A stretch of DNA of 64,000 nt from assembly GCF_006345805.1 (NCBI RefSeq), contig NC_043007.1, positions 10,292,001 to 10,356,000 of the forward strand, written 5' to 3'. Source of the DNA: Octopus sinensis. Taxonomy: Eukaryota. The position numbers and the translations under genes were made by a program. Below, one piece after another: positions 14,556 through 60,095 of the stretch; position 1 is the stretch's first letter, and the number at the start of each line of letters is the position of its first letter. Below the pieces are notes generated by a model. That model worked only from the letters and a program-made list of their open reading frames with translations. It did no database searches and was not told the origin of the DNA.

Positions 14556-15785
14556 TTATTTCCGTTTTATTCCAAATATCTTTTTAATTTCGTCTATAAA
14601 ATTTTTGTTCCTGCAGCTGTAAATAATGGGATTTGAGCAAGAACTGATGTAAAAACTATGTCGTGCAAACCAGTAGAAAAACAATGCTGCTTTCGGAGCC
14701 GAGCTTAGGGATTTCACAACTGCGTTTACTATCAATGTAGCGGTGCAAGGCAAATAGGTCATTATGAAGACGACAGTAATCATCATCATTGTTATAGTGG
14801 TACGTTTTGTCCTCTTGGCTTGTTCTTTTGCTCGTCTTTCGCTGTCCGCTTCCCGTAATTTAGTCATACGAGGTGCAATGTTTTTCGTATATACCGTTGA
14901 TATCTCATCCGAGGAAACTTTAGATGATATTTCGGTAACAGACAATTCAACTACGTCTAGAGAAACGCTCGTGGATAATCGATTAGAATCAACCGTTTCT
15001 GGTACATCAAGCCACTTTTGTTGACCCTTATCAGAACAGGGTAAGCTTGCGATGCTATTCCTGTTTTGTTGGGATATGGCAATTTTTCTTTTATTCATTA
15101 CTTTCATACGTCGAAGAATTATGCCGTAGAGAACAACAAGAATAACAAACGTAAACACTGCTAGCAGAAAGTAGAGAGCAAAGAATCCAAGTTGATAATA
15201 GTTAGGCTTCTTGTAGTTTTTTGCTGAGCAGGAATAGCTATTCATACCAGGATAAATAGTCGGTTTCTTGATACTTCCATAGTAAAGAAGAGCAATACTT
15301 CCCTGTGTTGCACAGAAAATAAAAATACAGGCTGTGATGATTTTAGCAGCTTTCATTGTTATCTGATACTTCAGTGGTTGGCATACTTTTCTGTATCTAT
15401 CCGTTGCAATGGCCAGTAGAAAACCATAGTTACAAAGTCCTGTGAATACTGATAAGCTCAAATGGAACTTGCACAATATATCCCAGGTTGACATCAAAGG
15501 GTAAATATTTTGGACAATACGAGCTGGTGTCACACAGGCACATATTATCAAATCAGTACAAGCCAGCATCACAACAAAGAAATAAGTTGGTGATAATTTC
15601 AAACGAAATCCATAAACGTAAATAGTTAAAATGTTTCCAACGAAACCAATGGTCATTGTTAATGCAATAAGAATAGTAAACGGAAGTCTTATCAAAACTT
15701 GTTGCCAGTTGAGTTCTTCGATGGTGACACTATATTCCGTACTGTTTGTTGTTACATTCTGCACTGAATACATAAACGACGACAT
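14556..15785 (-). CDS. Class A (rhodopsin-like) GPCR, paralog 1 (409 aa), orphan
   Basis: Intact ORF, 7 hydrophobic segments; TM1 GN, TM2 LACTD, TM3 C...DRY, ECL2 Cys (YSC), TM6 FIMTYLP, TM7 NPIIY; N-terminal sequons NVT and NST; long Ser-rich ICL3. Confidence 0.95.
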   Translation of the reverse strand: MSSFMYSVQNVTTNSTEYSVTIEELNWQQVLIRLPFTILIALTMTIGFVGNILTIYVYGFRLKLSPTYFFVVMLACTDLIICACVTPARIVQNIYPLMSTWDILCKFHLSLSVFTGLCNYGFLLAIATDRYRKVCQPLKYQITMKAAKIITACIFIFCATQGSIALLYYGSIKKPTIYPGMNSYSCSAKNYKKPNYYQLGFFALYFLLAVFTFVILVVLYGIILRRMKVMNKRKIAISQQNRNSIASLPCSDKGQQKWLDVPETVDSNRLSTSVSLDVVELSVTEISSKVSSDEISTVYTKNIAPRMTKLREADSERRAKEQAKRTKRTTITMMMITVVFIMTYLPCTATLIVNAVVKSLSSAPKAALFFYWFARHSFYISSCSNPIIYSCRNKNFIDEIKKIFGIKRK

Positions 15786-15822
15786 CCTTTCCCGATTTTG
15801 GGCTGCGTTTTCTCAGTTCAAT

Positions 15823-15850
15823 CTGAATAAGAAAATATAAGAATAAGAAA
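15823..15850 (-). other. Putative 3' splice acceptor of GPCR1 coding exon
   Basis: Minus strand TTCTTATATTTTCTTATTCAG|AT, 37 nt upstream of the ATG; same spacing in paralogs 2 and 3. Confidence 0.7.
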
Positions 15851-16499
15851 TATTATCCGTAAGCTCCATGATTACTGTGGTATAGACAAATTTATAATCA
15901 AACTCTAGGACTTATACATATAACAGAGTAAATAGTACTAAAAGAAACTGAACTTAGATTTCGTTTTACCTTTTACTTGTTTCAATCATTGTACTACAGC
16001 CATGATGGTGAACAGCCTTGAAGGGTTTAGTCGGACAAATTACATTCTTTGCTTACTTTGGTTAAAAGTTTTGCACTTATTCTATCGTTACTTTTGCTGA
16101 GCCGCACCAAGTTACGGGAACGTAGAGAAGCTAAGACCTGTAGTCAAGAGGTGGGGGCAGAATACAAACACAAACGCAATGGCACAGACATATGCATACA
16201 CATAGATATACATACATAGTGCATGAAAAAGTCTTACGAAACGAAACAAACAATCCATGAGTACCTGTACTAGGTGTATAACATGTCTGAAGAAGAAATA
16301 TATCAGCAAGGAAATGAGATTAAAAAAAAAACCAGGATGATCACAATTAGGTCTCAGAAAATGAAGATAATGATGCTACCCTTCTTATTCAATAACATAA
16401 GAAAGAAATCACAGCAGCCATTATAAACCTCCCTGCAACCAAGGAACTATTGAAACAACGAATACAACTGAAAACCTGACGGCTTAGAAAGTATGACAA

Positions 16500-16850
16500 A
16501 AGTGGGGGAGCATCATAGCTATGTGTTGAAAGGAATTCTTTGAGGTTTGGATAATTCCCCTTTGGAAACAGGGGTGTTTTGTTCAACATCCTTAAACAAC
16601 CTTCATTCAGGGACCTTTTGAGCAGGATGGGTTACTCGGCCTGGAGAAAATTCTAACTGGGCCCCACCAGCAAGGTCATGCGCTATTTATCTTTATATGA
16701 GATCACCATATCATGCACATATGGTTGTGATACCTGTGCTTGGTGTACTCTTATCAGACGGGTAGTGATGACGGGTATACTAAGCTTCGTATATTTCACC
16801 CCAGTGTCACTTTGATGGCATGCACTGCTATCTCACTCAATGATAATAAT
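16500..16850 (+). mobile_element. Non-autonomous (TAA)n-tailed element, 5'-truncated copy
   Basis: Aligns to 22240-22585; ends CTCACTC(AAT)n. Confidence 0.75.
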
Positions 16851-16989
16851 AATAATAATAATAATAATGATGATGATGATGATGATGATGATGATGATGA
16901 TGATGATGATGATAATGATAATAATAATAATAATATAATAATAATAATAATAATAATAATAATAATAATAATAATAATAATAATAATAA

Positions 16990-17195
16990 CGCTGACAGAA
17001 CGATCCAGGCTAACTGAGCAGGTATAATTATAAAAGACAAGGAAGAAAATACTTGTAGACTAGCAGATGTAAATTAAGTGTCCCCACTAATAAACATATA
17101 CCTGTAAAGGAATTTGACAAACTAAGTAACTATAAGGACCTGGAAATTGAAATACAAAAGATGTGGCACCTTAAAGCGAGAACTGTTCCTGATTG
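16990..17195 (+). mobile_element. R4/Dong-like LINE fragment (restriction-like endonuclease region)
   Basis: Encodes KEFDKLSNYKDLEIEIQKMWHLKARTVP-like motif; follows a (TAA)n array. Confidence 0.65.
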
Positions 17196-17199
17196 ATAC

Positions 17200-57935: not shown

Positions 57936-57972
57936 CCTTCTCCAATTTAGGGGTGTGTTTTTTCTGTTTAAT

Positions 57973-57998
57973 CTGAATAGGAAAAAATAGAAATAAGG
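57973..57998 (-). other. Putative 3' splice acceptor of GPCR3
   Basis: TTTCTATTTTTTCCTATTCAG|AT, 37 nt before the ATG. Confidence 0.7.
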
Positions 57999-58407
57999 AA
58001 TATTATCCTCAAGCTCCATCATTACTTTGGGATAGACAAATTCATAATCAAACTCTAGGACTTAGATATACACACAACATAGAGAAAATAGTACTAAAAG
58101 GAACTGAACTTACATAGACTACGTTTTACCTTTTACTTGTTTCAATCATTGGATGGCTGTCACTTCTGCTGAACCTTTGGAACTAAGAGAAACCAATGCA
58201 TGTAGTCAATAGGTGTGACAGGGGACAATCACAAACTCAAATACACATGCATAGACACACAGACACATACGTACTGCACGAACATAACATAATTGGAGAA
58301 GAAATATATCAGCAGGGCAAGGAGATAATTTTTTTTTTCTAGTTTCAGCTACATATATTTCTTCCCCACAAAAGACCATTTGAATACACAATAAATTAAA
58401 ACAAGGC

Positions 58408-58500
58408 ACTTACTCAGAGATTTTAGGTTCGTTCGGTAGTTGTGGAGCTCACACAATGATATGAAGCTAAAGCAACAATGTTCTTCATACAAGAATAAGT
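58408..58500 (-). other. Putative non-coding first exon end and donor for GPCR3
   Basis: CTGA|GTAAGT at 58413; predicted intron 441 bp. Confidence 0.6.
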
Positions 58501-58856
58501 GAAAACTCTGGATGTCAGTCTCTCTCTCTATATATATATGTGCACAAACGAACAAAATTCTCGGACCTTGAGTCACGCTGTGGCACCTGCAAAATATTAG
58601 CAATATGTGTGTGTGGGAGGTGGGGGTCGTGAATGTGTGTGTATACATACATCTACGCGCGAATACACACACACACACACACACACCACACACACACACA
58701 CACACACACACACACACACACACGCACACACACACACACACACACGCATTCTTTTCTCCACTTAAGCTTATGAGCTTGCTGTCGTTTAATTTCCTGAAAC
58801 TTGTTTAGCGCATCCTATTATGTTATAGTGTATTTCATTACTACATGAAGACACAT

Positions 58857-59200
58857 GTGAAGGCGTGTGGCTCAGTGGTTAGAGCATCGAGCTTACGATC
58901 GTGAGGTTGTGAGCTCGAATCCCGGACCGGGCTGCGTGTTGTGTCCTTGAGCAAGACACTTTATTTCACGTTGCTTCAGTTCACTCAGCTGTAGAAATCA
59001 GTTGCGACGTCACAGGTGCCAAGCTGTATCGGCCCTTGCCTTTCCTTTGGACAACATCGGTGACGTGGAGAGGGGAGGCCGGTATGCATGGGCGACTGCT
59101 GGTCTTCCATAAAAAAACAACCTTGCCCAGACTTGTGCCTAAGAGGGTAACTCTCTCGGTGCAAACCCATGGTCAGTGTCTGACCGAAGGGGGTCACCAT
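58857..59200 (+). mobile_element. tRNA-derived SINE with 12-bp TSD, duplicate of 49914-50257
   Basis: Same TSD at 58845-58856 and 59201-59212. Confidence 0.9.
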
Positions 59201-59752
59201 ATGAAGACACATTAGTGACATGAGGTCTTCCATTTTAACAACCTCTAGCGAGAGACACTCTCCACCGTTACTAACCTGCTAGAAATTGCAACAAAATCAC
59301 CTTTAAATCACATCATACCATATTAAATAATGAATTCTATACTGAATAATGTAGAGTGCGATGTACAAAAATTGAAACGGTCATTGTTGATAACTCTTAT
59401 CCATGCATCTACTCAATCAAGGTCGATCTAGTTCACAGTTATACTATATAGAGAAAAGGCCCTGTGCTACAGTTATGAACTTTCAACTATATATGAACAT
59501 ATAGATATATATATACATACGAGCTAAACACCCTCGTCCAATGGACGGTGCTGAGTTGTCAAACATTTAAACCAAATTTTCTCAAAAAAACTTGTCCGAC
59601 CGTCCCCTTTGAGAAACACTGATTTAACCTAAATTTGAGACTCCAGCAAAAGAAGAAATAAAGATAGACTTTTTTCTATTCCAAAGAAAAATGATATTAT
59701 TCGCAGAAATATGCAACCGAAGAGTTTACAGTACCAGTAATGATAAGGCTGT

Positions 59753-60095
59753 TCACTTTTCTTGAATATTATCGGGACAGCAGATGTTTGTAATACTATT
59801 GCTATTTTGTTGTTGTTCGACACCTTTTGTTTTCTCCAAACCCTTCATATGTCGAAGAATTATGATGTACAGAATAAAGAGAATAACAAACGTAACCATT
59901 ACTAAGGGACTGTCGAAGGCAAAGCATGCAAGTTGATAATAGTTAGTCTTCTTGTAGTTATTTGTTGAACAGGAATAGCTGTAGATACCAGGATAATTAG
60001 TTGGTTTCTTAATACTTCCATAGTTAAGCAGAACAATACTTCCCTGTATTGCGGAGAAAATAAAAATACAGGCTGTGATGATTTTCGCAGCTTTC
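59753..60095 (-). pseudogene. GPCR paralog 4, 3'-truncated; TM4 to start of ICL3 visible, 5' part in the gap
   Basis: 113 codons KAAKIITACIFIFSAIQG...PDNIQEK* homologous to paralogs 2 and 3; the TGA arises at a deletion junction where paralogs have TGG; not in the ORF track as it lacks a start. Confidence 0.85.

Follow-up and report, generated by a model that had tools for sequence, protein, structure and literature searches.

A 64-kb stretch of the Octopus sinensis genome (GCA_006345805.1; CM016869.1:10292001-10356000 by a 100% identity match over 21 kb at one of the two places to which the G1 protein maps), referred to here as the window, contains a tandem array of class A G protein-coupled receptor (GPCR) genes. 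An open reading frame (ORF) scan of the window yielded three intact minus-strand frames at 14556-15785, 39628-40929 and 56727-58022, with lengths of 409, 433 and 431 aa, designated G1, G2 and G3; counted from a conserved MSS- start, the proteins comprise 409, 404 and 402 aa. All three matched the whole Pfam 7tm_1 profile (PF00001, positions 1-260 of 260), with E-values of 3e-35, 4.7e-31 and 1.9e-32 and scores of 122.4, 108.6 and 113.2 bits against a gathering cut-off of 30.5. A tblastn search of the window with the G1-G3 proteins additionally recovered a partial fourth copy, psi-G4. The preliminary description of this DNA had listed three intact minus-strand paralogs and one truncated copy, and the ORFs, the full-length 7tm_1 matches and the tblastn fragment bear this out.

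A 3' splice acceptor is conserved upstream of the start codon in all three genes (Table 1), and RefSeq isoform X1 of the paralog P0004 (MLSG followed by LNRENTPQNWRRMSSY) splices at an acceptor 37 nt before the MSS- ATG. Given this RefSeq splice and the conservation of the acceptor, the gene model for G1-G3 is thus a single coding exon (409, 404 and 402 codons) behind an intron in the 5' untranslated region (5'UTR). A candidate upstream exon of G2 is also listed in Table 1; it was located with a peptide of the O. vulgaris model P0019 (305 aa), which is itself chimeric and extends over 20 kb that include the intact orthologs of G2 and G1.

Self-comparison of the window showed that the genes lie within duplicated units. 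The stretch common to G1 and G2 extends over 2.1 kb at 79% identity and takes in the coding sequence (CDS) with 3' and 5' flanks of ~0.24 and ~0.56 kb, respectively. That common to G2 and G3 covers 1.45 kb at 93% identity: beyond the CDS, the 5' flank matches without interruption for ~0.14 kb and, further upstream, in scattered blocks, whereas the 3' flanks match for no more than ~10 bp. The shared flanks ascribed earlier to all units are therefore substantial between G1 and G2, but largely confined to a short 5' segment between G2 and G3. The 3' flanks of G1 and G2 run into a (CTT)n microsatellite without a poly(A) tract, and, those few base pairs apart, that of G3 shares nothing with them. 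A retrogene origin was rejected in view of the acceptor 37 nt 5' of the ATG, the shared promoter-side flank, the tandem orientation and the missing poly(A). Unequal crossing-over is favoured over retroposition because the copies have the same orientation, share the intron acceptor and the 5' flank, and lack a poly(A) tail.

A second repeated component, block U, sits upstream of G2, G3 (as a partial copy) and psi-G4 in turn. End alignment showed that U2 and U3 have a common terminus, after which they diverge. The whole 3.5-kb block is confined to the window, with only short pieces elsewhere in the array, which suggests that U was once part of a larger unit that was later trimmed; block U would then be the remnant of a duplication unit of at least 10 kb. 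The same distribution, a whole 3.5-kb block found locally and only short pieces elsewhere in the array, led us to reject U as a single transposon. Separately, a ~2-kb block occurs in two copies at 83-90% identity. The copy at 1549-3490 is located 11 kb downstream of G1, and that at 44397-46347 is 3.5 kb upstream of G2; the block may be either a repeat element or another leftover of a larger duplication unit.

The fourth copy consists of 113 in-frame codons at 59756-60094 without a stop, and is most similar to G2 (83% protein and 93% DNA identity), followed by G3 (78% and 90%) and G1 (65% and 80%). In the alignment, its homology breaks off after ...GAAAAGTG at ~59755, which is a real breakpoint, and its other end, at 60095, is the last base before a 100-N assembly gap. 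Since the run of N starts at 60096, the upstream half of the truncation is an assembly artefact; of the truncated copy in the preliminary description, the breakpoint at ~59755 stands and the end at 60095 does not. In the gap-free O. vulgaris segment L009, the counterpart of psi-G4 continues upstream where O. sinensis has the gap: the N-terminal half is present at 7359-8089, the reading frame switches near residue 127-152, and ~1.4 kb of extra sequence lies between the gene and its 5' flank. By this comparison the gap at 60096-60195 conceals ~5.5 kb, comprising the 5' half of psi-G4, the ~1.4-kb insert and the 5' flank. The O. vulgaris copy is cut at the identical residue-281 junction with block U2. 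The same frameshifted copy with the same junction in both species marks psi-G4, on sequence grounds, as a genuine shared pseudogene that predates the O. sinensis/O. vulgaris split.

The comparison with O. vulgaris also bears on whether the copies are real or are haplotigs or mis-joined duplicates of one gene. An assembly artefact of this kind could be suspected for two reasons: psi-G4 lies at a contig edge beside a gap, and a redundant copy of the G1 region exists at 77.46 Mb. This second copy (L001, CM016869.1:77456284-77477513) matches window 4558-25782 in inverted orientation, 46 kb from the chromosome end, at 99.8% identity, with 2 substitutions in 21 kb and 25 small indels that fall mostly in homopolymers and microsatellites or cluster near one end. 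Judged from its sequence, it looks like the G1 locus assembled twice, which would inflate a genome-wide copy count and leave the in-window paralogs unaffected. Against an artefact, DNA divergence among the in-window copies is 7-21%, and in the independent, gap-free O. vulgaris assembly (OX597824.1) G1, G2, G3 and psi-G4 recur in unchanged order with 97-99% DNA identity. In its segment L010, which aligns collinearly with window 51267-7521 at 97-98.8%, both G2 and G1 have intact orthologs, with protein identities of 99.1% and 99.8%; its segment L009 matches window 60095-54981 at 97.7-98.8%, including the G3 ortholog P0003, which is 98% identical. The gene content of this segment is identical in the two species, and the coding divergence of G2 between them (0.66%) is below that of its flanks (1.2-3%). 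The same copies in the same order in L009 and L010 therefore refute the haplotig explanation for the in-window copies, a possibility that the preliminary description had itself raised, and we give an artefact next to no credence.

Two observations concern the O. vulgaris record itself. G3 and G2 are ~16 kb apart in O. sinensis but ~43 kb apart in O. vulgaris. The additional ~27 kb maps between window ~51267 and ~54981 and might reflect either sequence inserted in one species or a collapsed assembly of the other. The O. vulgaris model P0007 (638 aa) is a chimera in which unrelated tail exons are joined to a P0004-like receptor and a P0009-like fragment.

The 64-kb window covers part of a larger array, which spans at least 203 kb and at least 8 loci of chromosome CM016869.1 (Table 1). 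P0004 (XP_029642744) has no exact chromosome record; by the O. vulgaris order it lies upstream of psi-G4, outside the window and >10 kb upstream of G3. A degenerate copy of the GPCR N-terminus lies 1.9 kb downstream of P0002 (L003, 13088-13447), with 48% identity to G1 residues 1-140, and the N-terminal part of P0018 lies in a different reading frame from the rest (L007, 9687-10891). By their sequences, both are evidently further dead or dying copies. Head-to-tail paralogs, shared flanks, copies of different ages (synonymous divergence, dS, of 0.10-1.3) and pseudogenes all occur in this array, as in birth-and-death evolution. Orthologs of G1, G2, G3 and P0002 were not present among the O. bimaculoides homolog hits, a result obtained without a dedicated search of that genome.

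Table 1. Features of the window (window positions) and loci of the array on chromosome CM016869.1 (chromosome positions, marked chr). TM, transmembrane helix; ECL, extracellular loop; ICL, intracellular loop.
Feature	Position	Strand	Remarks
G1	14556..15785	-	Intact single-exon CDS, 409 aa, class A GPCR; ORF, Pfam, O. vulgaris ortholog, AlphaFold2 model
G2	39628..40842	-	Intact single-exon CDS, 404 aa; ORF open upstream to 40929; = P0006
G3	56727..57935	-	Intact single-exon CDS, 402 aa; ORF open upstream to 58022; = P0036; ERY replaces DRY
psi-G4	59755..60095	-	341-bp pseudogene fragment: TM4, ECL2, TM5, start of ICL3 (residues ~168-281)
Assembly gap, 100 N	60096..60195		Conceals remainder of psi-G4
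3' splice acceptor	15823..15824 (G1); equivalents 40880 (G2), 57973 (G3)	-	Pyrimidine tract + CAG; 37 nt upstream of ATG in 3 of 3 genes
Candidate upstream exon of G2	42114..42185	-	1.2 kb 5' of G2; peptide MGIPGFFSDTDEEEKSVTKKEKLQ of O. vulgaris model P0019 maps there; GT donor, then GTACGC
G1 duplicated unit	14314..16420	-	79% to 39324-41488 (self-blastn); CDS, ~0.24 kb 3' flank, ~0.6 kb 5' flank
G2 duplicated unit	39324..41488	-	79% to G1 unit; 39618-41069 93% to G3 (self-blastn)
G3 duplicated unit	56717..58162	-	93% identical to 39618-41069
U1	47221..50771		3.5-kb local segmental repeat upstream of G2; 86-89% to 61035-63892, 94% to 58354-59757
U2	58354..59757		Partial U copy, 94% to 49414-50771; end abuts psi-G4
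U3	61035..63892		Third U copy, upstream of psi-G4; 86-89% to U1; end alignment
P0010	chr 10,256,494	+	1:1 orthologs in O. vulgaris, O. bimaculoides, Argonauta
G1	chr 10,306,556	-	In window
G2	chr 10,331,628	-	In window
G3	chr about 10,348,727	-	In window
psi-G4	chr about 10,351,755	-	In window
P0009	chr 10,405,606	-	Array member
P0002	chr 10,441,630	-	Degenerate N-terminal fragment beside it
P0018	chr 10,458,567	-	Frameshifted partial copy

The remaining intergenic DNA of the window consists of microsatellites and broken retroelements. Reverse transcriptase fragments of the long interspersed nuclear element (LINE) type lie at ~10.7-11.7, 24.6-26.1 and 29.4-33.2 kb; the stretch at 34.7-36 kb contains fragments of RNase H and integrase. 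The corresponding degraded ORFs, at 10482-11903, 24656-26130, 29451-33202, 34731-35984 and 51069-52380, are non-long-terminal-repeat (non-LTR) reverse transcriptase fragments together with one LTR-type RNase H plus integrase fragment (34.7-36 kb); all those matched by Pfam are interrupted by stops or frameshifts, and those at 51-52.4 kb have no Pfam match. Pfam scans of the intergenic ORFs returned only broken retroelement domains and no further host gene, and tRNA and Rfam scans of the window returned nothing relevant. Two long-period tandem repeats, both 97% matching, were found at 13372-13828 (184 bp x 2.5) and 46346-47231 (394 bp x 2.2); the motif GGCGGAATTTGAACTCAGAAC of the 184-bp unit looks, from its sequence, like a short interspersed nuclear element (SINE)-like element.

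We then consider the relationships among the copies. Protein identity is 84% between G2 and G3 and 71-74% between G1 and either of them. In a bootstrapped neighbour-joining (NJ) tree, an octopod clade (92%) has P0010 together with Argonauta as its earliest branch and P0009 with the O. bimaculoides protein P0008 as the next, followed by a young clade (100%) of the form (G1, P0002) + ((P0004, O. bimaculoides P0005), (G2, (G3, O. vulgaris P0003))); support for these clades ranges over 87-100%. The G2/G3/psi-G4/P0004 and G1/P0002 clades are younger than the P0009 and P0010 lineages, and all four window copies predate the O. sinensis/O. vulgaris split. The earlier ranking of paralogs 2, 3 and 4 as closest and paralog 1 as older agrees with these identities, with dS and with the tree.

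The ratio of non-synonymous to synonymous divergence (dN/dS, or omega), calculated by the Nei-Gojobori method, falls as the pairs become older. It is 0.72 for G2-G3 (dS 0.10), 0.50 for G1-P0002 (dS 0.23), 0.52-0.62 for G1-G2 and G1-G3 (dS 0.27-0.29), and 0.20-0.35 for pairs with P0009 or P0010 (dS 0.6-1.3). For both G1-G2 and G1-G3, omega is significantly lower than 1. Between O. sinensis and O. vulgaris, the non-synonymous to synonymous changes number 1:1 in G1, 4:4 in G2 (omega 0.27) and 11:1 in G3, counts too small for significance, and those in G3 are spread over both lineages. In O. vulgaris, a 1-bp difference in a T run alters the last six codons of G3. Taken together, the values describe purifying selection with relaxation in the youngest copies, and they neither demonstrate nor exclude adaptive change.

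Identity is 55-80% for octopod members of the family (58-80% in Octopus, 55% in Argonauta) and 45-49% for a sister clade (P0012-P0017). An exhaustive phmmer search of 1.84 billion representative sequences returned only 24 at E <= 1e-30, in which the family representatives are 51-61% identical; the next match below the family is at 34% (a cluster with a Sepia pharaonis protein), followed by gastropods and bivalves at 25-33%, and no non-cephalopod protein in this search exceeded 33% identity. Going by these sequence comparisons, the receptor family is cephalopod-only and multiplied in octopods. The lineage-specific tandem birth-and-death expansion proposed in the preliminary description is supported by the phmmer search, the NJ tree and the pseudogene shared with O. 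vulgaris, and 1:1 orthology to a characterised receptor, which that description named as a refutation, does not apply, the best match in a sequence search of the PDB having E = 1e-15.

An AlphaFold2 model built on a 29-sequence alignment (pLDDT 74, pTM 0.71) predicts seven helices and helix 8, at residues 22-61, 66-94, 102-135, 144-165, 196-246, 303-356, 365-392 and 394-403, together with a beta-hairpin in ECL2 (169-188, strands 169-175 and 182-188) and a disordered ICL3 (247-303). Foldseek assigned the model a probability of 1.00 to many GPCR structures; the best 50 matches are all opioid, NOP, orexin, NPFF2, NPY2 or SSTR5 receptors at 14-20% identity, and the target-normalised TM-score is 0.62-0.85 over the listed matches and about 0.75-0.85 for most. 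The predicted ECL2 hairpin and these peptide-receptor folds are as would be expected of a neuropeptide receptor, which is a weak indicator. In the PDB sequence search, the top matches are the kappa opioid and alpha-2A receptors, and GPR84 is among the few full-length ones.

The motifs associated with class A receptors are kept in all copies: N1.50 (N51), D2.50 (D78), D/ERY (R130), Y5.58 (Y220), NPxxY (N385/P386/Y389) and the cysteine pair between C3.25 and ECL2 (C105, C186). Atypical features are TYLP, with Y6.48 in place of the W6.48 toggle, F in place of W at 4.50, and the absence of P5.50; W6.48 (in CWxP), W4.50 and P5.50 are usual in class A and not obligatory. Aminergic receptors use Asp 3.32 as the counter-ion of the amine, and opsins use Lys 7.43 for the retinal Schiff base. 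Here, position 3.32 is S in G1, A in G2 and T in G3, S/A in other octopods and S/L in the sister clade, and position 7.43 is Y (Y379) in every cephalopod member tabulated, in agreement with the earlier statement that neither the aminergic D3.32 nor the opsin K7.43 is present. The N-terminus is short and, from its sequence, probably glycosylated as in peptide receptors, and ICL3 is ~90 residues long. Two local features stand out: the N-terminal helix TIEELNRQQ (G1 residues 21-29, window ~15699-15725) is kept even in bivalve relatives, and a serine/acid cluster, SSKVSSDEIS (residues ~280-292), is conserved within the otherwise variable ICL3 and may, from its composition, be a phosphorylation site.

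Pocket-facing side chains were assigned from generic numbering rather than from model coordinates. On this basis, 14 pocket positions are invariant across the cephalopod members tabulated, with Y6.48 nearly so; they include R2.61, Q2.64, H3.28, G3.36, Q4.56, F5.39, Y5.43, F6.44, Y7.35, W7.36, R7.39, F7.42 and Y7.43. Seven of these (R2.61, Q2.64, H3.28, Q4.56, Y5.43, W7.36 and R7.39) differ in the two mollusc relatives compared, a bivalve and a gastropod. Positions 3.32, 6.51, 6.52, 6.55, 6.58, 7.31 and 7.32 vary among the young paralogs.

Relatives of this array have been described before. Ritschard, Fitak, Simakov and Johnsen (2019, Proc R Soc B, PMC6408891) delineated two class A expansions specific to cephalopods, for which they reported tandem co-localisation, divergent expression, branch-wise positive selection and a place in a molluscan neuropeptide-receptor clade. 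Their class A Group 1 (Table S2) lists three O. bimaculoides proteins, A0A0L8HMV5 (= P0005), A0A0L8HJ61 (= P0008) and A0A0L8G2D5 (= P0038). In our NJ tree, as distinct from the authors' own, P0005 and P0008 pair with the array members P0004 and P0009 at 100% bootstrap, P0038 falls in the same 90% cluster as P0010, and G1-G3 nest inside the octopod clade (92%) that holds these Group 1 proteins. The array therefore cannot be called an undescribed system, as had been proposed. Group 1 is, however, a broad set of 63 sequences from three species, and in PMC6408891 neither this sub-family nor the O. sinensis/O. vulgaris array, with its pseudogenes and pocket residues, is treated separately. The expression shares given there are 0.32 in subesophageal brain, 0.18 in supraesophageal brain and 0.14 in testes for A0A0L8HMV5; 0.23 in axial nerve cord, 0.18 in subesophageal brain and 0.12 in sucker for A0A0L8HJ61; and 0.53 in posterior salivary gland for A0A0L8G2D5, so that the sucker share of these verified orthologs is at most 0.12. 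Two further Group 1 proteins, both absent from the homolog hits and unconfirmed as family members, were not used as evidence: A0A0L8HJ24 (sucker 0.59, skin 0.34), next to the P0009 ortholog on the same scaffold, and A0A0L8HMT0, which lies beside the P0004 ortholog.

Nath et al. (2025, Mol Biol Evol, PMC11886862) catalogued tandem lineage-specific class A expansions in 19 cephalopod genomes; they treat such expansions in Lophotrochozoa as candidate chemoreceptors, find cephalopods depleted in them, and note that cephalopods use ionotropic chemotactile receptors. The octopus array resembles these expansions in its tandem arrangement, in lacking 1:1 orthologs between distant taxa and in combining full-length, truncated and pseudogene members, but they are read there as chemosensory, whereas the orthologs of the octopus family are mostly neural or glandular. 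Because Group 1 in Table S2 and PMC11886862 list such expansions, the family is already catalogued, still orphan, and its expansion is ordinary in kind. G3 (P0036), at least, is already present in NCBI/UniRef. Database names conflict among the family orthologs (alpha-2 adrenergic, tyramine, dopamine D2, CCK-A, GPR22 and kappa opioid), and the automatic names of distant relatives conflict as well (neuropeptide S, CCK, muscarinic, D2 and GPR84-like).

The anatomy of the locus points to an origin by local head-to-tail segmental duplication, through unequal crossing-over, of units with the coding exon, flanks and the splice acceptor of the 5'UTR. The duplicated units would later have undergone deletion, retroelement insertion and pseudogenisation, leaving G1-G3 intact and psi-G4 dead. 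Motifs and predicted fold suggest, with less certainty, that the proteins are signalling-competent seven-transmembrane receptors. Their likeliest role would be to sense endogenous ligands of neuropeptide-like or other neuromodulatory type within the nervous system and glands, with an invariant pocket core (R2.61, H3.28, Q4.56, Y5.43, W7.36, R7.39 and Y7.43) and a surrounding shell in which the paralogs differ. The identity and origin of the array, as a tandem cephalopod-only orphan class A GPCR family, we hold with high confidence; a peptide or neuromodulator function of G1-G3 is a tentative proposal that we would not quite call probable; and identity, origin and function taken jointly we consider probable. 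Peptide sensing had been offered as an alternative in the preliminary description, and it is plausible in that it would fit the predicted fold. The family resembles peptide receptors (opioid, orexin, NPFF2, NPY2 and SSTR5) in the ECL2 beta-hairpin, the C3.25-ECL2 pair, DRY, NPxxY and the short glycosylated N-terminus, but differs from them in the absence of D3.32 (opioid) and P5.50, in Y6.48 and F4.50 for W, in the length of ICL3 and in its own cationic pocket, at an identity of 14-20%.

Several results weigh against a peptide or neuromodulator role and against specialisation of the copies. The fold likeness to peptide receptors is generic, with 1320 PDB chains matched at E <= 0.001 and at 14-20% identity. 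The expression argument rests on orthologs of the neighbouring P0004, P0009 and P0010, not of G1-G3, and the two conserved pocket arginines and the histidine are equally compatible with a small anionic ligand. Variable positions account for 20 of 38 pocket sites versus 64 of 182 other transmembrane sites, a marginal difference (P = 0.065). The omega of G2-G3 is indistinguishable from neutral (P = 0.098), region-wise dN/dS revealed no concentration of non-synonymous change in the extracellular half (omega ~0.7-0.8 in both membrane halves), and the 11:1 ratio in G3 may mean that some copies are drifting rather than specialising.

These last points lead to the reading that the copies are redundant and decaying, with only P0010, P0009 and perhaps G1 functional and G2 and G3 drifting toward pseudogenes. 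The near-neutral omega of G2-G3, similar in both membrane halves, the changes in G3 and the fact that copies do die (psi-G4, the P0018 frameshift and the fragment near P0002) are all in keeping with it, but G2 and G3 maintain uninterrupted 400-codon ORFs in two species, their activation motifs are all intact, and the G2 orthologs have an omega of 0.27 with coding divergence below that of the flanks; we regard such decay as unlikely. A chemosensory role, toward which the preliminary description leaned, would make G1-G3 odorant- or tastant-type GPCRs, expressed one per cell in suckers, skin or olfactory organ and duplicated for ligand diversification. The clustering, the single coding exon, the pseudogenes and the raised dN/dS of young copies recall vertebrate olfactory-receptor arrays, the pocket shell varies between paralogs, Lophotrochozoa expansions of this kind have been treated as candidate chemoreceptors (PMC11886862), and G1 has a weak match to Pfam 7tm_4 (28.0 bits against a cut-off of 27). 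That match, however, covers only profile positions 5-118 of 280, and G2 (24.5) and G3 (19.6) fall below the cut-off; in contrast to olfactory-receptor arrays, the family is tiny, with about 8 loci in O. sinensis, and its pocket core does not vary among the cephalopod members, as would suit one class of ligand common to all. Brain, axial nerve cord and posterior salivary gland take the largest shares of expression in its verified orthologs, without dominance of sensory tissue, and cephalopods have few class A expansions and rely on ionotropic chemotactile receptors instead (PMC11886862). The chemosensory leaning was accordingly given up, and we rate this role as improbable, on a par with decay.

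Somewhat better placed, although still in the minority, is a small anionic ligand such as a carboxylate or phosphate metabolite or a lipid, with R2.61, H3.28 and R7.39 anchoring the acid and the variable shell tuning the rest. R7.39 binds acidic groups in nucleotide and dicarboxylate receptors, which is a lead and not a test. All cephalopod members have the same cationic residues in the pocket, which the bivalve and gastropod relatives lack, and GPR84, a fatty-acid receptor, is among the few full-length PDB sequence matches. On the other side, the pocket orientation was assigned by generic numbering instead of model coordinates, a free peptide C-terminus or an acidic peptide could also be accommodated, and Foldseek places peptide receptors first. 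A related and rather long-shot idea is a ligand chemistry of the cephalopods' own, in which the invariant cationic pocket would serve an acidic class (a metabolite, a cephalopod-specific acidic peptide or an environmental cue) and the shells of G1-G3 would discriminate related ligands, possibly in gills, suckers or salivary gland; if true, this would be a new ligand-receptor system and not a duplicate of a known neuropeptide pathway. Very little speaks for the array members being true orthologs of their database namesakes (alpha-2 adrenergic, CCK-A, kappa opioid or GPR22): the names themselves and the top PDB sequence matches, kappa opioid and alpha-2A, are in favour, but the names disagree among near-identical orthologs, the PDB E-value reaches only 1e-15, structural matches are 14-20% identical, D3.32 is absent and no non-cephalopod protein exceeds 33% identity. 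We consider this highly improbable.

With the family and its tandem nature already published, the locus adds little that is new in kind. It does provide a clean map of the array validated in two species, with its intact copies, shared pseudogene, assembly errors, and conserved and variable pocket residues. To our knowledge, no ligand is known for any expanded cephalopod-specific GPCR, and the map and the list of pocket residues allow deorphanisation to be better targeted; the adrenergic, CCK, opioid and GPR22 names in databases should not be taken at face value. Cephalopod-specific GPCR expansions are among the few gene-family changes tied to the novelties of the coleoid nervous system and organs.

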